From Bugula neritina (lineage: Eukaryota > Animalia > Bryozoa): DNA of 64,000 nt. Below the pieces are notes generated by a model that had not been told where the DNA came from, ran no database searches, and was given only the letters and a program-made list of their open reading frames with translations. The stretch covers positions 24,399,319 to 24,463,318 of the forward strand of contig OZ037768.1 of NCBI GenBank assembly GCA_964035545.1. Direction: 5' to 3'. This document shows, one piece after another, positions 32,330-46,095 of this stretch; the first letter of the stretch is position 1, and each line of letters starts with the position of its first letter. Made by a program: the position numbers and the translations under genes.

Positions 32330-35300
32330 TCAGCTGAAGAAAGGTTTCAGAGAGGGTTTAGTTATCCAATCAGTGGATCTGATGAGTTGATACACGGAGA
32401 TGAAAAGGAGGGGAAATCGGGACAGGAAGTAGACGTGTGATTGGCCGAGTTGTGCTCTTAGATGAATAGATCTGAAACAATAGACATGGAGGGTTTGGAA
32501 GAGGTGGTGTGAGAGAGTATATATACTATATAGACTAAGAGGTGGTGTGAGAGAGTATATATACTATATAGACTAAGAGGTGGAGTGAGAGAGTATATAT
32601 ACTATATAGACTAAGAGGTGGAGTGAGAGAGTATATATACTATATAGACTAAGAGGTGGAGTGAGAGAGTATATATACTATATAGACTAAGAGGTGGAGT
32701 GAGAGAGTATATACTATATAGACTAAGAGGTGGAGTGAGAGAGTATATATACTATATAGACTAAGAGGTGGTGTGAGAGAGTATATATACTATATAGACT
32801 AAGAGGTGGAGTGAGAGAGTATATATACTATATAGACTAAGAGGTGGAGTGAGAGAGTATATATACTATATAGACTAAGAGGTGGAGTGAGAGAGTATAT
32901 ATACTATATAGACTAAGAGGTGGAGTGAGAGAGTATATATACTATATAGACTCAGAGGTGGTGTGAGAGAGTATATATACTATATAACTACATAGACTCA
33001 TAGTTATAATAAATAATAATGCTCACATTTTGCTGTAGTTTTGATTAGTCGTGTGCATAAACATCAGCAAATCACAGATGCTTTGGGAAACCTTCGGTTC
33101 AACTTTCATATCATCCAACAGTCTGCCGTCCACTTGCCTCGTCTGTATAATATATAATGATATAGTATATGAATGTGGACTAGTAATACTATATACTTAA
33201 CTGAGTGGTGGTACTGTGGACTAGTAACACTATATACTTAACTGGGTGATAATACTGTGGAATAGTAATACTATATACTTAACTGAGTGGTAATACTGTG
33301 GACTAGTAATACTATATACTTAACTGGGTGGTAGTACTGTGGACTAGTAATACTATATACTTAACTGAGTGGTAGTACTGTGGACTAGTAATACTATATA
33401 CTTAACTGAGTGGTAGTACTGTGGACTAGTAATACTATATACTTAACTGAGTGGTAGTACTGTGGACTAGTAATACTATATACTTAACTGAGTGGTAGTA
33501 CTGTGGACTAGTAATACTATATACTTAACTGAGTGGTAGTACTGTGGACTGGTAATACTATATACTTAACTGAGTGGTAGTACTGTGGACTGGTAATGAT
33601 ATATAATAAACTAGAGGGAAGCTCCACCTACTCACCCAATCTCTAACAGTCGGGTGTAGAATGATGGCATTGAGTTGTTCGGTCAGCTGTGTACTTTTCT
33701 GGCTAAATGAGTTTCCTACCTCCAAGAGCTCGTTACCAACGGCAACCAGCATCTCAAACTTCCTTTTCTCAGCCCAGAAGTAGGGATGCCTGAAGACAGA
33801 TATATAGAGTAAGCATACGGAGGGAGGGGGTGTCAAACCCACCCGTACTCGAACACATCAGAATACCAACTATCAGCCAGCTGGAGACAGGAAGTCAAAC
33901 TAAGAATCACGTCTAACCTGAGAACTGAGTTAATATCTGCCCGGTCCCGGGGTTCCTTAGCTATCATAGACAGAATGAGATGCTTAGCCTCAGGGCAAAC
34001 TCCCTTCAACTTGGGGCAGTTGCTGGCCATGTTGGTCTCAATCTCATAGATGCTGTCGCCAAACACGTGCTGCCCTCCAGTTAGGATGTAGTAGACGAGC
34101 AGACCGGCCACGTATATCTCAGAGTGCAGTGTGTAGTGTAGCATCACCATTTGACCCCCAACAGACTTACAACTGCTCAGACATTCCCGGGGTCTCCAGC
34201 AATTGTCTCCCCCTTTTCCAGAGTAAAACATGGTGAGTCCTACAGAGTACAGCTGAGGTGTGAATACTGAGAAATACACAGAGAGACAAGATAGGGAGGA
34301 GAGATAAGATAGGGAGGAAAGAGAGAGTGTGACATTGAAAGTGCCTACCGTCGGGGGCGACGTGGGAGAGCCCGTAGTCGCTCAGCTTCAGCTTGCCTTG
34401 AGAATCGACTAAGATATTGGTAGGTCTGAGATTTCTGTGTAACATAAGACACCGGCAATGCAACACCTGTAATACACAGAGTAGAGTGTGTAATACGCAG
34501 AGTAGAGTGTGTAATACGCAGAGTAGAGTGTGTAATACGCAGAGTAGTGTGTGTAATACGCAGAGGAGCGTGTGTAATACGCAAAGGAGAGTGTGTAATA
34601 CGCAGAGGAGTGTGTGTAATACGCAAAGGAGAGTGTGTAATACGCAGAGGAGAGTGTGTAATACGCAGAGGAGAATGTAAGGGATCAGTTTGAGTTTACT
34701 GCTACAAACTATTACCTGCAGCCCTTTCAACAGTTGGCAAACCAGTCTATAGAGTGTGGCAAAGTCCAGAGGGGATTTAGATGGAGCTCTCTGCAGAAGT
34801 GTGTTGATGTACCCGTCCAGTGTGTACTCGCATAGTTCTTGGGCTATGTAGCCATAGTGCTCATCTTCTGCTATTTCCTGTAACAATTCAACTACACCTT
34901 CAGACTACTAGCAGATGTTACTCCTACTAGCAGACGTACTCCCACAAGCAGACGCACTCCTACTAGCAGACGTACTCCTACTAGCAGACGTACTCCTACT
35001 AGCAGATGTTACTCCTACAAGCAGACGTTACTCCTACTAGCAAACAGTACTCCCACAAGCAGACGTACTCCTACTAGCAGACGTACTCCTACTAGCAGAC
35101 GTACTCCTACTAGCAGACGTACTCCTACTAGCAGACACACTCCCACAAGCAGACGTACTCCTACTAGCAGACGTACTCCTACTAGCAGACGTACTCCTAC
35201 TAGCAGACGTACTCCTACTAGCAGACGTACTCCTACTAGCAGACACACTCCCACAAGCAGACGTACTCCTACTAGCAGACGTACTTCTACTAGCAGACGT

Positions 35301-38300
35301 ACTCCTACTAGTAGATGTTACTCCTACTAGCAGACGTTACTCCTACTAGCAGACGTACTCCTACTAGCAGACGTACTCCTACTAGCAGACGTTACTCCTA
35401 CTAGCAGACGTACTCCTACTAGTGTCCCAACCAAAGTGTAGAAGCTCACCAGGTATTTAATCAGATGCTCATGGTGGTACTTTGGCTGCAAAAGTTTCTG
35501 CAGATTATCCTTGATAGGCGTGTACATGGGCAACGGGATTCTTTTAACAACTGCGGCACTGTTACTGACCCTGCCCATTAGCATGAGGATGTCTACGCCG
35601 TACATAGGGCTTGTCCCCAGTATATACGTGTTGTCCATACACAGGACTATATTCCCCTTAATCAGCAGCTTCTCTGCGGGACTAGACTGGAACTTCCAGA
35701 ACAGCATCTCGTATCTCTTAGCTGCCGCTAACGGCAGCATCGACACACACTCAGCCTCATTGTTGTTGTTGACACTCTTTACACCAGGGTCACCCGGCGC
35801 TGTCAGGGAAGACTGTTGGTGCTGGAGAGGCTGCTGACGCTGCTGATAGTGCAGTTTACCTGCCAGCTGGTACTGTGGGTGTTTGCCTTGATAGGACTGA
35901 GGCAAGCCTGTCTGCTGCACCATAGACTGAGCTCCGTGCTGCATTGGTTGCTGGTGGTAGGGGCGTCGCGGTAACGGCGAGTATTGGTAGGTCCTTTGGG
36001 ACTGTACAGACTGTGAAGGGGTTGCCATTGTCAACTGATATGCTGAAATACACAACTAGTGTGATTAGCTAGAACAAGCATGTGATTGGTCAGGTGTGTA
36101 GAAAGTAAAGTGATCAACTACGAGCAAAACTAGGTTATACATAAACTAATACGTCTGCAGAGCTACCTTGTTGCTGGTTGTTGATTGGCTGATTCCTCAA
36201 CATCACACCATATGGTATATAGTAGCCAGAAGAAAGGGAGGAGGAGCTACCATGACTATGGGCCACGCCCCCTGTGTTCATAGGCCTGCTACAAGCCAAT
36301 CAGAGAACTAAAATACTGTGTATGGAAAAGGGGATATTAGTATTTACGTAGACAAGTCAGGTGACTCTTTTATTCTCAATACTTTTGGGACATAATTTGT
36401 CGTGTTTTCCTCAACTATCTATTCACAAAACTGTCCAAACACTATCCCCCCCCCCCACCATAGTGGTTAGCATATTACTCAGAGGCTATTCCTAGAAGTC
36501 AAAGAAGATAATACACAACTTGTGTCATTGAGTCATTCAATATGAGAGAGACAGGGAGATGGAGCTCACCTCTGAGGAGGGGGCATTCTGAAACAGTTCT
36601 GGTACGAATAGAGCGAGTTCTTCATGTCGCTGCTTTTCACTTGAGCGAAAGTGCCAGTTGAGTTCACAGTGGTCAAGGTTCCCAGGCTAGGAGTAGTGTC
36701 AGTTCCATTCACACTATTTGAGTTGACTAGGGTGTTAGTAGATCCACCCTTCTGCTTGATAGAGAGAGATCTCTGGCTGGCCTGTTGCTCGTACAACTTC
36801 TACAGCAGAAGACAACTCCGTGTTTCTCTCTTGAGACAGAATTATAATTACTATGAAGGCTGGTTTATTAGAATTTTCACACAAGAACACAACTCCGATT
36901 TATCTATGATGTACTACAAGGTAAAGGCAAAACATTAATGGTAGAGCTAGAACACAGCAGCATGTTTAAACATACTGTCACTACACTGACACTATACTGT
37001 CACTATACTGTCACTATACTGACACCATACTGACACCATACTGTCACTACACTGTCACCATACTGACACCATACTGACACTATACTGACACTACACTGTC
37101 ACTACACTGACACTATACTGACACTACACTGTCACTACACTGACACTATACTGACACCATACTGACACTATACTGACACTATACTGACACTATACTGACA
37201 CTATACTGACACCATACGGACACCATACTGACACTATACTGACACTACATTGACACTATACGGACACTACCTTCAGGTGTCTGCCGAGCTCAGAAGTCAC
37301 ACTCAATGATGACTCATGTATTTTTGAAACTTGAGCTTCGTCTTCCGATGAGTCATGTGACAGGAAACCGATGTCATCCAGAGGTGACGGGGTGATCTCA
37401 GGAACACGAATATCCGTGAGAAAGTTGGTGTAACGAGGATCTGGGATCTTTGATGCAGGAAGCTGTAAAGTAGAGCACCCAGTTTACACTATAGGCCAAC
37501 CTGTACAAGAGAAGGGTGTCACAAGACGGAGACATATAAACAAGGAGTACCTCATCTAGTGCTAGCTCTACTTGGAAATATTCTACTGGACCAGTGTCTA
37601 CCACAGAAGTAGACATGCTCTGTGCGGGGGGTCTGATACACGCCCCACTAAACAGACTGGTACTCTCATGTAGGATGTTTGGTACCACAGGTCTACTGTT
37701 CAGCACTCCAGGTGAACCATCTGGAACCTTCTCTAAACTTTCATCAACAGTTTTCTCTACAAACAATCATCAATTACTATATGTATATTTCCATATAAAC
37801 ACGTAAATAGTACTTTTATTACTAGTAAAGACACTCAGTGAATAAATACTGTCTTAAAAGGATAGAGAAACACCCTCACTGCAGACGTACCTTTTTCATC
37901 GTCTGCTATCAGTCGACTTATGCTTGCATCAGACACCAAGTCTGACATTTGACCTTCACCTTCATATTCAGATACAACATCTTCCACCGCAGCCTTGACT
38001 GGAGTTTTCTCCACATTGCAGTTGATTTTACGAGCAACTTCCGGCAGGAGAAATTGACTTAGAGTGAAACACTCTTTATCCTGAGGTAAGAAAGGAGCCA
38101 TGATTGAAGGCAGAACATAATGAACGATTTGAACTTTTGATTAAATAATACAAAGCTTTTGAGTTGCTGTATTTTCTAGAACAATCCTCAGTATTATTTC
38201 AATCAAGCATTTGTTTGCACATTCAATTCATGAGCAGATAATTTCACTAGTTCTACTGATTCGGCCAAGTAGCTCCTGAACAGCCTCAAGAATCTGTAGG

Positions 38301-41300
38301 GATACAGAGACAGGAAACAGACTACTACCTTCCTAGCACTGGGGCTAACAGTGACTGTCTCAGTAGCCACTCTAAATACAGGTGCAGACGGACTAGCAGC
38401 GGCAGCGGCAGCAAACTTCTTCACTTCTTGACTTTCATCTGATTGCGTGACGACTTTGGGAAAATCAGAATCTACGACTAAAATAGATCACAGAAATAGT
38501 CTCCGCCTTTCAAGCCTCTCTTTCATCTCTAGTGTAAACTAAGCGACTAGTAGGGAGTAAACTAACCCTTTTGTTTGAGAAGATCTGCCCAGCTGGTTGG
38601 AACTGTGGATACAGTAGATATTGGTAAAGGTGGTTCATCTGACGCCCCCTCCACCTTCTCTGGTTGGCCTGGTGATGGTTCCTTGACTAACTTATGCAGA
38701 CAGTCTAGAGGGGTTTCAGTTGGCACATCGCTCTCTTCTGCATCGCCGTCTGCATCACCGTCTGCATCTTTGAGCTCTTCACTCTGAGTCACCTTGCTGG
38801 TCTCAGGAGATACTGTGTGACTCACCGGAGAAACTTCCTTTTGAAAGAAAATCCCAGAAATATTAGGTTAGTGACATTCTAATGTGTAGCTAGCTTGAGT
38901 GGTTAGCCAAAAACATCATAGCTGCATTCCTGTGAGTGTGTGAAATTAATTTATAAATAAATTATTACGCTTTATTAGTCAAAAAATTTAATATGATTTT
39001 CTCAATAAATTCTCATTCAATTGTAAAATCATCCTGTATGAAAGATTTACTGTAGAGTATTTCCTATGTTGAGAACATGAATATTAACTTACGACTTTCC
39101 AACAACATTAAACTTGTGCAGAGTCATACCTCTTTAGTAACTTCCACGTCTGCTGCTACATCATCCAGTTTGGCGGCCATCTTGGGAGAGACACCGGCAT
39201 GCTGCTCTACGTCACTCAGCACCACCGAGTTACTTTTCTCTGCAGTCGACACACTCAACACATTTGCAGACGGAGAAATAGACTTGCTTGATAAATTTGA
39301 CCTTGAAAATGATAAATCAAAGGTCATGTGGCAGAAAACAGAAGCAGAAAATAGTAGCAGAAGATAGTAGAAAGTAAGCAGAAGGCAAAAGACAGAAGCA
39401 GAAGATAGTAGAAAGTAAGCAGAAGCCAAAAGACAGAAGCAGAAGATAGTAGAAAGTAAGCAGAAGGCAAAAGACAGAAGCAGAAGATAGTAGAAAGTAA
39501 GCAGAAGGCAAAAGACAGAAGCAGAAGATAGTAGAAAGTAAGCAGAAGGCAAAAGGCAGAAGCAGAAGATGGAAGCAGAAGTATTTCAGTTTACTAATCT
39601 GAAGCATGCCTTGGACTCTCCGTGTCGTTGGCCCGCGGCTCAGTGCCAGTCTCATTCACGGTGATGGGCAGGGTCTTGGGGTCAACAGGAAATGTTAGGC
39701 CCCGCCTCCTCTGCTTTGTGGACCGCCTACTCAACACTGGCTCAAACTTGTCGCTGGTACCGGATTCCCCTGTAGCAGCAGACAACTTCTCTGGAACATA
39801 AGAGAAGGCGACTCGCACCTAAAACATCAGAGAAAGTGCTTTCAGAGCACAGCATTGCAGGACTTCATTCTTTGAGCTACTTTTCAGTCTAACCTGTGAG
39901 GTGCAAAGAGGAATAGTTTAAATAAAAATATTAAACTGAGAGTTGTAGGAGTCTTGCATCAACACAGACATTTCTGTGCAGATTATCAAAATTATCGAAA
40001 TTATTGTTTATCGGAGTTTGTGAAAACAGCAATGGCTGAAATTGGGTTCCATGAGTAAGTTGCTAACCTACTTTTCTTGACTTAAAACTCATTTCAATTC
40101 CTAAACCCTCAATTTCTATGACTGAAATACTTTCACAGCTGATTACCTCGTCTTCTATCAACATTCCTGGGGTACTCTCAGTATCCCCTTTTCCCTTCCC
40201 CTTTCGTCGACGTCGCTTTTTCTTTTTCTGCTTGCTGAGTTTAGAGTCGTCATCAGCCTCGTCTTCATCGTCTGCTACATCTGACACCTCATCCGTCTGC
40301 CTGGTTGACACCTCGCTGACACCTTGGACTGAGTGAGTGCTCCTGCTGATGCCCGTCACTTTGGGAAGAACATTACATACACTTGACTAGTAGTTACAGT
40401 ATGTGACATACACGTGACTAGTAGTTAGAGTGTGTGACATACACGTGACTAGTAGTTACTGTCTATATGAAGTAAGCAGTGAGATTATGATGAGAAAAGT
40501 TTATTGCGTTAACCTTCTGTTAAGTAGTTAACTATCTGCTTAACAGAGCTGGTCTGGTTTGTAGAGCCAGTCTGGTTTGAGGGACCAGCTTGGTTTGAGA
40601 AACTGCTCTGCTTTGATGAAGATGTCTGGTTTAAAGAGCCGAGTTGCTTTAAGTTGTCGGAACAATCCGGAGCGTCGTGCCAGTCACAGCCCTCCACTGA
40701 AGCGTTGTTGTTGCTCATCTCTTCTATTGGTAGAATGCCTGAAACAGATTTTAAGTCAGTTGACAAACACAATTGACCAATCAGGAGCTCTCTCTACAGC
40801 AGACAGCCAATTGTAAACTGTTTAGAAAAATTTACTTTCTAGAGCCTTCTTTCTGCTCTTTTTAGCCTTCTTCTTTTCCTTCTTTTCAATCTATAGAAAA
40901 AATAGAAACACAGTATTTTTATAATAAAAATAAAAGTTACTTGAAAGAAAGTGTATGACTTTGTTTTACATTGAATAAACTCCATCACTCAGCCTCCATA
41001 CCTTTGCTTTCTCCTGAGCCTCACTCCGCAGCAGTTCTTCACAAGCTATGTCCGCTTTCAGTCGCTGAATCATTTCAAATCTAACCTTGAACTCAGTCCA
41101 CGCGCTCTCTGTCATCACCCTGTTCTCCTCATACTACAAACAGAAGAATAAACCAGTGAGTGATTGAGTGAGTGAGTGATTGAGTGAGTGAGTGATTGAG
41201 TGAGTGAGTGGGTGATTGAGTGAGTGAGTGAGTGAGTGAGTGAGTGAGTGAGTGAGTGAGTGAGTGAGTGAGTGAGTGAGTGAGTGTATGTGAGAAAACA

Positions 41301-44300
41301 AGAAAGCAAGATAAAATGGTGTAAAGCAGACAAGACAAAACTAAAAATATTAAACCAAAAATTTTTAAAGTTAACAATTTAAAAAGAAATCACAAACAAA
41401 ATAGGGTATGAAATGCATGAAATAAAGTGGGCAGGGTTATAATTCCCAGCATTGCTGAGCAGCCAATAATTGAAACTTTTCAAAAGGTCTGAACTCACAT
41501 GCAATTGCAGATTCTTTTTGTCAAATATTTGAACAAAAGAGACGAGCTTGTTCCAGTTCTCGCGAAGCCAAGAGTGGGCTTTAGCGTGAGTGCAGGCGAA
41601 TATGAGAGGAAGTAGGAGGGAGATGATAGTGGCGGATTGTCTATGCTTGTTTGTTGACATGTAGAACTCCAGCGACTTTAGGATTATCTCCAGACACTAG
41701 AAACAGGAAATAGATATTCGTAACGATCAGAGAAGAGTATTTCCTGGAGAGTAATTAGACCTGATGAGATGACCTCTACATAAAGGAACCAAAAGAAGAC
41801 TCAACGCCACCTAAAAGTCTGATTCTCAGCAGAAACCTGAAGCACAGAATGTCCCTCAAAACACTGACTAGTTAAATAACAGTCTAGTCAGACTAGCTGG
41901 TCAACTATCAAGTGGCTGCACTTGAAAACTTTACGTGGCGTAAAGAAGTAAGTTACCTCTTTCTGGATGAACTCGACAATGACCTCAACTTCTAGTGACG
42001 TCATGTTATGCATCGTCATGGCGATAAGCTGAGCTGCTCTCTGAATGAACTCGTCATGCATGATGTAACGGCATATGGCGCTAATCATAGACACGGCGAA
42101 TCCGCGCTGCTGCAGCTGCCTGAATGATAGAGAAAGTCGACCTGAACAGTAAACTAGAGACCTATATATTAGTTAGTGTAGTTTTGTATGATTTAGTGTT
42201 CTGTCTAAACAGTAACTGAAGTTTAAGAGTCGCGTGCATACTTCCCCCTACTAACAACACTTGATGTGCAAGAGGCTAGCAAATCTCTCTACTTACTTGC
42301 GGAAGGAATCGTGCCACAGGAGTTTGTGAAAGACAGGAAATAGAGCTGTGAGGTAATAGTCGATATCCGTACTGAATCCGGCAAAGGAGGTCATGTTGAG
42401 CAGGTTCAGTTTTCCCTACAAGAGAAGACAATTTCTTGTGACTACATAATACTCACTATAACTATGTAGTACTCACTGTAACTATGTAGTACTCACTGTA
42501 ACTATGTAGTACTCACTGTAACTATGTAGTACTCACTGTAACTATGTAGTACTCACTATAACTATGTAGTACTCACTATAACTACGTAGTACTCACTGTA
42601 ACTATGTAGTACTCACTGTAACTATGTAGTACTCACTATAACTATGTAGTACTCACTATAACTATGTAGTACTCACTGTAACTATGTAGTACTCACTGTG
42701 ACCATGCAATACTCACTGTTACTATGTAGAGAAAGCACTAGTAAGTACTTACAGCAATATAAAGCTGCTTGTCAGATAAACTAATTTTCTTGGCAATCAG
42801 TTCAAGGACGTCTCCCTTCTTCTCTAATATAGCGACACACAAAGGGGTCTCCCCGGACTACAAGTCAAGGTCATACATTGTGACGAGGTATGAAATCTCA
42901 GCGAATATGTAACTCAGTGAACTGAGCAAACTAATGGTGTGTCTATGTACAAAGATTAACCCACTCTTAGTCCTTTCTGGTACTAAGACTTGTTGTGACT
43001 GTTAAAACGCTTTTAATGTCTTATTTCTTGTAAAATAGTCTACAAGCTTAGAGGTCTAGTCTAAATGAATCACAGTGACAGATGATTTCTCATCACCGGT
43101 ACAAGAGCACTCAGTTCTAATGCATACAGCCATATAGGTTGAGACATATTATGTCTGTCTGTGTGTCTCACCTTGTTTTCTGTGATGACCTTGACATTTG
43201 ACTGGAGCAGACGTTTCACGGACTTCTTGTCGTTAGCTCGAGTAGCTATAGCCAATGAGGTGTCACCGTGCTCACTCACCATGTTCTTATTGGCTCCTCC
43301 ACTCAGCAGCATGTTGATACACGACTCCCAGCTTTTCTCTGCTGCCAAAAGCAGCGCCGAGTACCCTTTCTACACAGACACAGGAGAAACCCTTTCTACA
43401 CAGACATAGGAGAAACCCTTTCTACACAAACACAGGAGAAACCCTTTATACACAGACATAGGAGAAACCCTTTCTACACAGACATAGGAGAAACTCTTTT
43501 GTTACATAAGATGGCAAGGAATTACTATTAAAACATTAAGTGGCTAAAAATTTAAATAAAATCAATTTATTAAGATTTGTTTTATAAATTAGACAGTTTT
43601 GTGAGTTGCAACACACTCTTTGTTAGTTACAACTTACAAGACAAACTCTGAAAGAATTAATATATTAAGGTTACTAGTATTATAAGCTAACTACAGTATA
43701 TTACATCCTTCTACACAGCAGGACGAATTGACGTCATCTTGACATACCCGATTTCTGTGATCGATGTCAAACAGCTTCCTGTGCTGCCAAAGGAGGTTCA
43801 CGGGAACCGGGGATCCTGTCATCACAGCAACCATGAAAGCATTATTACCTTCCTAGAAACAAGAGTTATTACCTCCTAGAAACAAGTTTTTTTACAGTAG
43901 GGCAGGTGTTTAATAATAACTGAAGATGACCAAATCATTAAAATCTACTATTCAAGGCTTATGATACCTGATTTTCAATACAGAGATTAGCTTTGTGAGA
44001 GATGAGCAGGTTCATAGTCGACGCATACTTCCCTCTCGTCGCCAGAATCAACGGGGTGTTTCCATCCTAAAAACAGCAACAATCATATATCAGTTTATAT
44101 TAACTGTAGTTCACTACTCATAGGTCAGAAAATAACTTCAATATTCTGCACAGCAATGTTTCTTGCAAATAGCAGTTGATAACATTATATAAACTTGAGA
44201 AAACTTTTATTCACATAACATTTTTTTAAACTATTGCAAATTAATCTTTACATTGAAAATAGATACTGATAATCATAGTATACTAATGACTAATCAGTAC

Positions 44301-46095
44301 AAATACGCTTAGGCTAAATTAGAAAACAAACTAAAAATCTTAGATTTCATAGAATATGAAATTGAATGCCAATGTGTTTGCAGTTATACTGTTATCATTA
44401 TTATTATATGTTATTTTATTTAAATCCAGAAGTTACCATAATAATTATAATGACAATCACAATAATAATGATAATAATCGTGATAATCACTCTATCGTAC
44501 TGATAGTGATACTCAGTAGCCGTAGGCCTATCAAATTGAAGTTCCCAATCAATAACACAATAATCATAATGTTAAGAAGTTTTAAATAAAATTCAATGTT
44601 AACACATTTGAACTGAGCAATGACTATAACTATTACTATAACTATAAGCATTGTAATTGTCCCTACCTTAGGCTTATAGTTCCAGTTATCATTGTGATAA
44701 TAATTGAATTATATAATTTATTGCCCGTTCTACTTATCGTCGAACTAAAGCTACGACTAGAAGTAGAAGCCCCATCACTCATCACACTCATCATAAACAT
44801 CGAATACAGTTTTAGTATGACTGGCTTGCAAATGTTGACTTTAAATCTATCCATTTTCCATCATGCACTCAGTGATAATAAAGATATCACATCAGCACGC
44901 GACTGCTTGTTAGTATAATTTTGGAAAAACCAATAGAAAGCCAACAATTGAATGCCCAAGAACCTTAAATTTCTATTGGGAGGAAAGTTAAAGCTCTTAA
45001 ACCCACACTAATTTTGTACAGCTTTATCTACGCCAATTAAAATTATACTCGCAAGGCACATAGAAAGAAAAGGGCATACAACTCCTTTGATATACTTGTT
45101 CATTACAGTAAATACTGTCATGATACAGGGTGTGACAAATAATTTTATTTTAAAAATTTCTTTGTCACAGGTGTTAAGCTTTTAAGCCAAATGCTAAACT
45201 AGATCAATACTGCTGATATAAGAAACATGATATGTATTTTGTGTTATATAGTTCATAATTTAGGATTATATTATGTACTGAGCTCAGAAAAATTACCACA
45301 TACCCTTGGGTTTTGCATGTTGACATTGGCTCCAGCTTCTAAAAGCTTCAGCAAGCCATCATTGTATCCTACTGAACTGACTAGAAGCAGCGGTGGGATA
45401 GATACCTAGTCAACAAATAACAGAAATATTACTTCCTATTGGCTATTACTAAGTATATTATACCAATAGTTTTATTGGCTTTAATGAAGACTTCAAACAC
45501 AGGTAATAGCATTAGTTAAAAAACATTGAGATATCATAAAATATTAAATAGAAAACACAGATAAACTGCAAACAATATAACAAAAACTGTAATAGAAATT
45601 AAGGCACATAATATTATAAAGCAGTGAATGATCTTAGTTATATATTAGAGTGATTGAGCATGTGCAATGTGTCACTTGTCAGGTGATGTAGCATAGTAAT
45701 GCTTCATAGATGGTAAGTACTGTAAGTACTTATTGATGTAATGTTTGAAGTGAAACCAAAATACTAATTTACATGATTGCAAGTTATAACATCCTATACT
45801 GTTTTAAGGCTATCATAATACAATAGCTCTAATGAGTATCAGCATTAATTAATGACAGTATGAGATAGCTAAGAGCAATGTTACACTTTACCCATTTGTT
45901 TCTAAATCCATTCTTGAGAATGTCTGATGCGCTATGTTCTCGGAACAAAATATTGAGTTGGTGGATTGTGCTGCCTTCGATGTTAACTTGTTGCTTTCCT
46001 TTTGAGTCGGTTTTCTTTGGTTCTGAAAACATGGCCGTCTTCAAGACCTCCAGTGAACACACCCCAGGGCAAGCTGGCTTGCAGTTGCACGGCAT
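32330..46095 (-). CDS. RNase L-like ankyrin-repeat / pseudokinase / KEN-domain protein (IRE1-RNase L superfamily), ~1750 aa, ~29 exons
   Basis: Exons: 45892-46095 (start uncertain), 45304-45405, 43968-44066, 43748-43852, 43172-43369, 42753-42857 (six ANK-like repeats), 42297-42415, 41957-42119, 41499-41696, 41002-41133, 40836-40890, 40514-40738, 40147-40358, ~39610-39818, 39130-39301, 38567-38837, 38329-38477, 37891-38080, 37551-37756, 37271-37462, 36570-36799, 36167-36288, 35450-36042, 34716-34877, 34349-34466, 33918-34239 (kinase: AVVKR, YIAQELCEYTL, HRNLRPTNIL, SDYG, YYILTGGQHVFG), 33636-33789, 33027-33142, 32330-32471 (KEN: HPYFW..VGNE..RDW..DLLMF..YFLSRFPLL..VY). No signal peptide or TM seen, so not IRE1. 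Confidence 0.88.
32500..32985. repeat. Intronic minisatellite, 38-bp unit AGAGGTGGAGTGAGAGAGTATATATACTATATAGACTA, ~13 copies
   Basis: Fills most of intron 32472-33026. Confidence 0.95.
33174..33597. repeat. Intronic minisatellite, 41-bp unit ACTGTGGACTAGTAATACTATATACTTAACTGAGTGGTAGT, ~10 copies
   Basis: Fills most of intron 33143-33635. Confidence 0.95.
34468..34678 (-). repeat. 21-bp repeat abutting the acceptor at 34466, ~10 copies
   Basis: Minus-strand unit ACACTCTACTCTGCGTATTAC; only the last copy ends TATTACAG. Confidence 0.9.
34905..35423. repeat. Intronic minisatellite, 18-bp unit ACTCCTACTAGCAGACGT, ~28 copies
   Basis: Fills most of intron 34878-35449. Confidence 0.95.
36972..37270 (-). 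repeat. 10-bp repeat (ATACTGACACT-like) starting exactly at the donor GT of exon 37271-37462
   Basis: Minus strand reads AAG|GTAGTGTCCG TATAGTGTCA...; ~30 copies. Confidence 0.9.
39332..39580. repeat. Intronic 41-bp purine-rich repeat AGAAGATAGTAGAAAGTAAGCAGAAGGCAAAAGACAGAAGC, ~5-6 copies
   Basis: Seen directly. Confidence 0.9.
41155..41286. repeat. (TGAG)n microsatellite
   Basis: Seen directly; intronic. Confidence 0.95.
42441..42729. repeat. Intronic 20-bp minisatellite ACTATGTAGTACTCACTGTA, ~14 copies
   Basis: Each unit carries A|GTGAGT on the transcribed (minus) strand. Confidence 0.95.
43363..43492 (-). repeat. Splice-acceptor tandem array, 26-bp unit TTCTCCTRTGTCTGTGTAG|AAAGGGT, 5 copies
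   Basis: The exon-proximal copy is the acceptor at 43370/43369; one copy has TAT in place of TAG. Confidence 0.92.

Follow-up and report, generated by a model that had tools for sequence, protein, structure and literature searches.

Domain layout of the locus

The stretch of Bugula neritina DNA analysed here (64,000 nucleotides, contig OZ037768.1, positions 24,399,319 to 24,463,318; hereafter the window) carries one protein-coding gene of about 30 exons at 46095..32330 on the minus strand, the exon count being approximate within the linker. The predicted product is a soluble protein of roughly 1,700-1,900 residues. It is predicted to begin with 6-7 ankyrin repeats and an armadillo-like helical domain, followed by a long basic helix and a ~900-residue low-complexity linker; a pseudokinase and a KEN (kinase-extension nuclease) domain of the HEPN type form the C-terminal end. 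An earlier sequence-only reading of this DNA had proposed a single intact gene encoding ankyrin, kinase, and KEN parts in that order, and the intact frame, the colinearity with orthologues, and an open path through the linker bear this out. The architecture that it described holds for the order of the domains but not for their adjacency, as the armadillo-like domain, the basic helix, and the long linker separate the ankyrin repeats from the kinase.

Pfam and PDB searches of the window gene used single exons, and the joined kinase-KEN model was compared with locally built profiles. Pfam Ank and Ank_2 matched single exons (E = 6e-6 and 4e-7), and Pkinase matched the exon that carries the HRN and DYG motifs (34439-34371; E = 1.4e-9). 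The joined kinase-KEN model gave one continuous match of 262 bits to a profile built from IRE1, fish/lungfish RNase L-like, and octocoral proteins with intact catalytic sites. Together with the Pkinase match, this supports the earlier assignment of an IRE1/RNase L-type kinase followed by a C-terminal KEN domain.

Single KEN exons are each too short to reach significance. They gave no Pfam match, the exon with the catalytic block gave no PDB match when searched alone, and the last exon alone gave matches at chance level only. The first KEN exon matched IRE1 and nothing else in the PDB, weakly (E = 0.13) and precisely at the kinase/KEN border, while the kinase C-lobe exon alone returned borderline IRE1 matches only. 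In a six-frame genome scan, the last KEN exon reached 15.6 bits against PF06479. As stated in the earlier reading, the protein appears to lack a signal peptide and a membrane anchor: no membrane helix was found in the confident exons, where hydropathy over 19 residues peaks at 1.59, in a helix that the fold model places in the interior, and the N-terminus does not resemble a signal peptide.

Loss of catalytic residues in the kinase and KEN domains

By sequence, a kinase-fold protein counts as a pseudokinase if the VAIK Lys, the HRD Asp, or the DFG Asp is missing. The kinase domain of the window protein retains the VAIK-type, ATP-contacting Lys (VVKR), the catalytic-loop Asn, and the Asp of the DFG motif, which reads DYG here. 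It has lost the HRD Asp (HRN) and the αC Glu, which is replaced by Asn, and its G-loop is degenerate. All these departures from an active kinase had been recognised before, and the Asp-to-Asn change in HRD places the domain among pseudokinases.

The KEN domain is full-length and keeps its structural core, with 0/4 catalytic residues retained. Across the catalytic block (33094-33038), the alignment has full posterior support for the replacement of Arg by His, Asn by Thr, and His by Asn. The position of the catalytic Tyr is occupied by Lys under the IRE1 spacing and by Val under the RNase L spacing, which is one residue shorter. The claim that all four KEN catalytic residues are replaced is therefore upheld, with the substitute for Tyr depending on the spacing chosen. 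The Rx4-6H motif of HEPN domains is absent, the window protein having H-T-T-N-Q-N at this place. A survey of HEPN domains describes KEN fused to kinase together with ankyrin repeats and reports that the motif is kept in ~95% of members (PMC3710099). Judged by these residues, the window protein is a double pseudoenzyme, and we regard its identity and pseudoenzyme status as very probable.

Conservation in a close relative

Searching with an exon of the gene among 1.8 billion representatives returned a 167-residue product (P0001) encoded on a JGI metagenome contig of 4,824 bases (L005; sample 3300003318). This contig is ~90% identical at the DNA level to window positions 36849-32067, which indicates a close relative, and represents the 3' third of the same gene. 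It is host DNA within the metagenome, where the prokaryotic gene caller ran through an intron.

The seven C-terminal exons align to this contig without gaps and every splice site is kept. Over 525 codons, the rates of nonsynonymous (dN) and synonymous (dS) substitution are 0.008 and 0.152, a ratio of 0.054. In the kinase, dN = 0 over 282 codons. The KEN domain has a dN/dS of 0.08 and its degenerate block is identical in the two sequences. Two linker exons, 36799-36570 and 36288-36167, have a joint dN/dS of 0.03. Introns differ at 4-19% of aligned sites and contain many indels. Both dead domains and the adjoining linker are under strong purifying selection, which answers the question of selective constraint raised in the sequence-only reading.

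The loss of 4/4 canonical catalytic residues is what one might see in a decaying pseudogene, or in a KEN domain that still cleaves RNA with unconventional residues, for which the His at the Arg position would in principle be capable of acid-base chemistry. Decay is ruled out by the intact frame and splice sites in two taxa and by a dN/dS of ~0.05. Unconventional cleavage is at odds with the need for the Rx4-6H motif in the tested KEN, PrrC, and RloC enzymes (PMC3710099). We consider this pair of explanations extremely improbable.

A family of uncharacterised protostome proteins

The exon search matched mollusc proteins of 1,300-2,000 residues from Batillaria, Pomacea, Biomphalaria, Patella, Haliotis, Solemya, and Mytilus. 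They are annotated throughout as 'uncharacterized' or 'hypothetical', and Pfam Ank, Pkinase, and Ribonuc_2-5A all score above threshold in them. A word search with one mollusc member yielded 24 further mollusc members, none of them functionally named. Members from arthropods (spider, sawfly, beetle, and stick insect) have ankyrin repeats at the N-terminus and a kinase at the C-terminus; their KEN region is so degenerate that Pfam does not detect it. In a cockroach relative, only the kinase domain was detected.

The mollusc proteins and the hidden Markov model (HMM) built from them match the window gene colinearly over the ankyrin exons, the three helical-domain exons, and the Lys/Arg-rich stretch. 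After an unmatched stretch, the colinear match resumes and covers the kinase and KEN exons down to the common ...KPFF end. The window protein thus shares the whole layout with this family, from the ankyrin repeats through the armadillo-like domain, the basic helix, and the long linker to the pseudokinase and the KEN domain with its terminal motif. The fold model of the Mytilus helical domain predicts, at a predicted local distance difference test score (pLDDT) of 94, an all-helical structure in which about four armadillo-type repeats precede a long helix. Foldseek comparison of this domain gave weak matches to beta-catenin and to designed armadillo proteins (best E = 3.5e-3). In addition, a Logan contig of 5,473 bases encodes a 1,765-residue mollusc member with ankyrin, kinase, and KEN parts. 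Given its size relative to the product, this contig must be a transcript, so that ankyrin repeats and kinase-KEN lie on one mRNA in a mollusc.

With respect to the active sites, the kinase motifs read HGN with no DFG Asp in mollusc, insect, and spider members, HRG in one unnamed sequence (P0041), and HRN with DYG in the window protein. By these motifs, all examined protostome members are pseudokinases. The KEN block is more varied. In molluscs it is invariant: Tyr, Asn, and His are kept and Arg is replaced by Tyr. A Lys-Asn...His block occurs in one beetle, the cockroach keeps only the Arg, and the spider and B. neritina have 0/4 catalytic residues left. The RNase site has thus been eroded across the whole branch, and in B. 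neritina the erosion is complete.

The window protein is most likely, from its sequence, the bryozoan counterpart of this mollusc and arthropod family, a separate branch of the IRE1/RNase L superfamily. The suggestion that the protein might be undescribed needs qualification. Public annotation already lists its relatives under the name 'uncharacterized protein', yet the family is unstudied: our literature search found no paper on this protostome family, on its long linker and armadillo-like domain, or on its dead active sites.

Probable continuity of the gene across the linker

Exon borders were set from stop-to-stop frames combined with base-level reading of the junctions. The seven C-terminal exons have GT-AG borders and mutually consistent phases. 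The six N-terminal exons, starting from the ATG at 46095, are all in phase 0, with a TAG acceptor in all except the first. Between these two blocks, a dynamic-programming gene model found an open, phase-consistent GT-AG path with ~23 upstream exons, some of them doubtful. The path is over-inclusive in places, where A/T-rich intronic stretches were read as Ile runs, and was used solely to establish that an open path exists. A first dynamic-programming model, which had split the gene into many tiny exons, was discarded.

The locus could instead hold two neighbouring genes read as one, an ankyrin/armadillo gene and a kinase-KEN gene beginning at an ATG near 36030. An in-frame ATG (MATPSQ...) does stand at the start of exon 36042-35450, the Bugula junctions are read from genomic DNA alone, and the family HMM detected no homology between the linker (36800..40890) and the mollusc linkers. 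The comparison with the close relative speaks against such a start. The two linker exons directly upstream of this ATG are conserved and phase-matched, with splice sites kept, one in-frame indel, and the low dN/dS given above, and we conclude that the frame runs on upstream of the kinase exon; the start near 36030 was rejected on this ground. Moreover, mollusc and arthropod orthologues have both ends in one protein, in one case on the transcript-sized contig, and the window gene matches them colinearly at both ends. Two separate genes are accordingly very unlikely.

Position relative to IRE1 and RNase L

A kinase-KEN tree of 37 rows was computed under LG+C20 in a quick search; it is unrooted and mammalian RNase L is not among its rows. 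The window protein falls with molluscs (100), insects (100), the spider, and the one unnamed sequence on one side of a branch with a Shimodaira-Hasegawa-like approximate likelihood ratio (SH-aLRT) support of 91, a branch that is not starred. IRE1 (100), fish/lungfish RNase L-like proteins (99), and octocoral proteins (99) form separate clades. Forcing the window protein to group with IRE1 costs 20 log-likelihood units (P value of the approximately unbiased test, p-AU, 0.039), on which basis a bryozoan-specific IRE1 duplicate was rejected. The kinase-KEN phylogeny called for by the sequence-only reading thus sets the protein apart from the IRE1 and the RNase L-like clades and beside molluscs and arthropods.

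The window protein scores 257 bits against the mollusc profile, 243 bits against the arthropod, 233 bits against the fish/lungfish, 220 bits against the IRE1, and 155 bits against the octocoral profile. IRE1 and vertebrate RNase L-like profiles fit it about equally well. The KEN part taken alone scores slightly higher against IRE1 (62 bits) than against fish/lungfish proteins (55 bits). The resemblance of the KEN start to RNase L that had been pointed out is real for the short VGNE motif and does not extend to the whole domain. Among solved structures, the mollusc profile matches human IRE1 with 150 bits (1e-42) over a single stretch of kinase and KEN; its match to RNase L is weaker, at 91 bits (5e-25). 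The ankyrin profile matches generic ankyrins, and RNase L is not within its best 60 matches.

These data bear on whether the protein could be a true RNase L orthologue or functional analogue, one that would bind 2',5'-oligoadenylate (2-5A) or another nucleotide messenger, such as a product of a cGAS-like receptor (cGLR), and signal by assembly rather than by cleaving RNA. The order of ankyrin repeats, pseudokinase, and KEN is common to RNase L, and RNase L-like proteins of fish/lungfish and octocorals also have the VGNE motif after the KEN start. In the best tree, which is unrooted, a branch with a support of only 51 unites the protostome clade with that of fish/lungfish, so that a common origin of the ankyrin fusion is neither shown nor rejected. 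Against an RNase L-like function, the family profile fits IRE1 better than RNase L, and the ankyrin block has no special likeness to that of RNase L and lies >1,000 residues from the kinase. The genome search gave no match to OAS1_C, a weak negative given that control genomes were also without a match. A 2023 phylogenomic study confines the RNase L lineage to jawed vertebrates and describes the ankyrin repeats of some proteins outside it as 'likely gained independently' (PMC10400998); oyster, limpet, and sea hare have been scored as lacking RNase L (PMC6307210, PMC9334734). We judge an RNase L-like function unlikely. A role of the window protein in a 2-5A/OAS pathway, to which the sequence-only reading had linked it, is not supported.

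Other KEN genes in the genome

A six-frame PF06479 scan of the genome found only IRE1, on another contig and with its RAMRNK|KHHY block intact, and the window gene. A protein scan with the kinase C-lobe exon added one further paralogue at C2:9639260-9642716 on the minus strand (L007, L008, L009). This is a shorter kinase-KEN gene with a block (LLKFISDICDI) that is also dead, and no ankyrin match was found within 7 kb upstream of it. IRE1 is the only KEN gene found in this genome with an intact catalytic site.

Many pseudoenzymes regulate active paralogues. The window protein might, on this pattern, act as a pseudo-IRE1, tuning the unfolded-protein response by pairing with the cytosolic kinase-RNase part of genuine IRE1. 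In favour of this are the standing of IRE1 as the only intact KEN gene found, the slightly higher score of the KEN part to IRE1 than to the other outgroups, and the retention of structural core motifs. On the other hand, the family is old and diverged (at most 33% identity to any relative), and a conserved heterodimer interface is not evident. We find such pairing about as improbable as an RNase L-like function.

Exon map and further features of the locus

Table 1. Exons and candidate exons of the ankyrin-pseudokinase-KEN gene, in order of transcription
Feature	Position	Strand	Basis
Exon 1, ATG at 46095; N-terminus rich in Cys and Lys, followed by the helix pair that caps the ankyrin block on its N-terminal side	45892..46095	-	First ATG after an in-frame stop; GTAAAG donor; colinear with mollusc N-termini (P0017 residues 50-73)
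Ankyrin repeat exon	45304..45405	-	Family HMM positions 74-103; phase 0, TAG acceptor, GTATGT donor
Ankyrin repeat exon, 33 codons	43968..44066	-	Pfam Ank E = 6.2e-6; tblastn with Mytilus protein
Ankyrin repeat exon	43748..43852	-	Family HMM E = 1.7e-8; splice sites
Exon with two ankyrin repeats	43172..43369	-	Pfam Ank_2 E = 4e-7, Ank E = 6e-7; family HMM E = 1.6e-11
Last ankyrin repeat exon	42753..42857	-	Family HMM positions 239-271; splice sites
Possible extra small exon	near 42415-42297	-	Candidate only
Three exons (~42161-41957, 41696-41499, 41133-41002): armadillo-like helical domain and start of long basic helix	41002..42161	-	Colinear with mollusc residues ~270-500
Low-complexity linker exons, Ser/Thr/Gln/Glu/Lys-rich, including a Lys/Arg run; borders approximate	36800..40890	-	Open phase-consistent GT-AG path
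Linker exon	36570..36799	-	Aligned to L005: one in-frame 3-base indel, splice sites kept
Linker exon, end phase fits next exon	36167..36288	-	Comparison with the relative (L005)
Gln-rich linker end and kinase N-lobe (degenerate G-loop, VAIK-type Lys kept, Asn at the αC Glu)	35450..36042	-	Base-level reading, alignment
Kinase exon, hinge and αD-αE, IRE1/RNase L-type motif YIAQELC	34716..34877	-	Base-level reading, alignment
Kinase catalytic-loop exon: HRN 34439-34431 for HRD; DYG 34379-34371 for DFG	34349..34466	-	Pfam Pkinase E = 1.4e-9; translation
Kinase C-lobe exon of 99 codons, the query with which the family was found	33918..34212	-	100% amino-acid identity in L005
First KEN exon, starts RHPYFW	33636..33789	-	Sole PDB matches IRE1, at kinase/KEN border
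Second KEN exon, degenerate block: Lys/Val 33094-33089 (Tyr), His-Thr 33055-33050 (Arg-Asn), Asn 33040-33038 (His)	33027..33142	-	Profile alignment; block identical in L005
Last KEN exon, motif FLSRFP, end KPFFS; stop TGA 32332-32330	32330..32471	-	PF06479 positions 95-117; C-terminal motif common to molluscs

Two stretches of the predicted protein have an unusual composition. At 46095-46057, five Cys occur among the first 13 residues of the predicted N-terminus (MPCNCKPACPGVC), a feature that is not common to the mollusc N-termini and that could be a lipidation or metal-binding site. At 40386-40066, the open frame of the linker has an acidic run followed by a Lys/Arg run (KKKKKRRRRKGKGKG); this basic run looks like a nuclear localisation signal, and molluscs carry the basic helix at the equivalent place.

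The use of splice acceptors differs along the gene. TAG was found at 9/9 acceptors checked in the 5' half (46095-41002) and at the linker exons starting at 36799 and 36288. From 36042 downstream, five of the six acceptors are CAG, and the sixth, at 34212, is AAG.

In most introns, the greater part of the length is taken up by tandem repeat arrays, located at 32499-32990, 33174-33612, 34468-34678, 34905-35422, 36972-37269, 39356-39570, 41155-41286, 42450-42729, and 43363-43499. Their periods are, respectively, 38, 41, 21, 18, 11, 41, 4, 20, and 26, with up to 33 copies and 88-98% matches. The arrays are not of the same length in the window and in the contig of the close relative.

Elsewhere in the window, at ~16350-15570 on the minus strand, lies another ankyrin-repeat gene, which cross-matches the ankyrin part of the mollusc proteins and the family HMM.

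A proposed non-catalytic use of the kinase-KEN module

IRE1 and RNase L form nucleotide-dependent back-to-back dimers that bring two KEN domains together, and they are the textbook cases of a kinase-like domain switching on an attached RNase. The family described here is an old and widely kept protostome branch. Its kinase is dead in every member examined, and its RNase site is eroded to varying degrees. In B. neritina, selection as strong as that on an enzyme coexists with complete erosion, which argues for a non-catalytic use of the kinase-KEN module. No study describing such a use was found in the literature searched.

By analogy with IRE1 and RNase L, the module of the window protein would still fold, and would probably bind nucleotide and form back-to-back dimers. 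It could then serve as a regulated, non-catalytic unit for dimerisation or assembly, for RNA binding, or for partner binding, and the flexible, possibly nuclear-targeted linker would tether it to ankyrin and armadillo-like protein-binding platforms. As to its role, we tentatively favour a non-enzymatic dimerising scaffold or sensor, neither RNase nor kinase, as the likeliest single option, at somewhat less than even odds.

Taken as a whole, the best explanation of the locus is one intact gene of an uncharacterised protostome family whose kinase-KEN module would act as a non-catalytic scaffold or sensor, to which we assign a probability of about 0.72. Four points weigh against it. The junctions between the ankyrin/armadillo part, the linker, and the kinase are placed by orthologue colinearity and an open-frame path. 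Support for the protostome clade is moderate (SH-aLRT 91, from a quick tree), and the branches of the spider and of P0041 are long. Loss of activity is read from sequence, and with a His now at the Arg position an unconventional catalysis is possible. Finally, nucleotide binding, dimerisation, and any partner of the window protein are predictions.

A broader scenario would have the ankyrin-pseudokinase-KEN fusion ancestral to bilaterians, with RNase L as its nuclease-active survivor and the protostome form as a non-cleaving sensor or scaffold for a nucleotide ligand or RNA. We hold this to be doubtful, if less so than any single rival weighed above. Were it true, signalling through an ankyrin/armadillo platform would be an unrecognised arm of invertebrate innate immunity or stress signalling. 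The family, including its beetle, oyster, and snail orthologues, provides a defined gene set for research on pseudoenzymes and on invertebrate immunity. The locus itself offers a testable, conserved double pseudoenzyme and is not a first sign of an invertebrate OAS/RNase L pathway.

Comparison with known systems

In RNase L, 2-5A is bound by ankyrin repeats 2 and 4 together with the pseudokinase N-lobe. Like the window protein, RNase L (PDB 4OAV, 4O1P) has the order ankyrin, pseudokinase, KEN, no membrane anchor, and a non-catalytic kinase. It differs in its size of ~740 residues and in having the ankyrin block directly before the kinase, whereas an armadillo-like domain, a basic helix, and a ~900-residue linker intervene in the window protein. 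RNase L also has an intact Tyr/Arg/Asn/His site and binds 2-5A.

IRE1 (ERN1/Ire1p) can be aligned to the window protein from end to end of the kinase-KEN part, and the HRN motif corresponds to the Asp-to-Asn state in some crystallised constructs of human IRE1. The two differ at the N-terminus and in activity: both the kinase and the RNase of IRE1 are active, and a lumenal sensor domain and a membrane helix precede its kinase, whereas the window protein begins with ankyrin repeats.

The octocoral tandem kinase-KEN-Death proteins (Xenia XP_046855943.1) and the fish/lungfish ankyrin-kinase-KEN proteins (Protopterus XP_043924037.1) are likewise soluble superfamily members with a VGN motif after the KEN start. 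They differ in keeping the Arg-Asn...His block, in having other accessory domains, and in forming separate starred clades.

The arthropod members (Parasteatoda tepidariorum XP_015918059.3, Athalia rosae XP_048507813.1, Zophobas morio XP_063921986.1, and Diploptera punctata KAJ9576365.1) resemble the window protein in the long linker, the C-terminal pseudokinase, and the degenerate KEN region. They differ in their length (1,160-1,630 residues), in a KEN domain that falls below the Pfam threshold, and in other states of the catalytic block.

The closest resemblance is to the mollusc members, such as Mytilus trossulus XP_063441107.1 (P0072), Lottia gigantea LOTGIDRAFT_235319 (P0144), and Solemya velum KAL5021848.1 (P0043). 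They have the same colinear layout as the window protein, give it the top profile score of all groups, and fall on its side of the tree. The kinase-KEN parts are only ~33% identical, and the catalytic loop reads HGN in molluscs versus HRN in the window protein.

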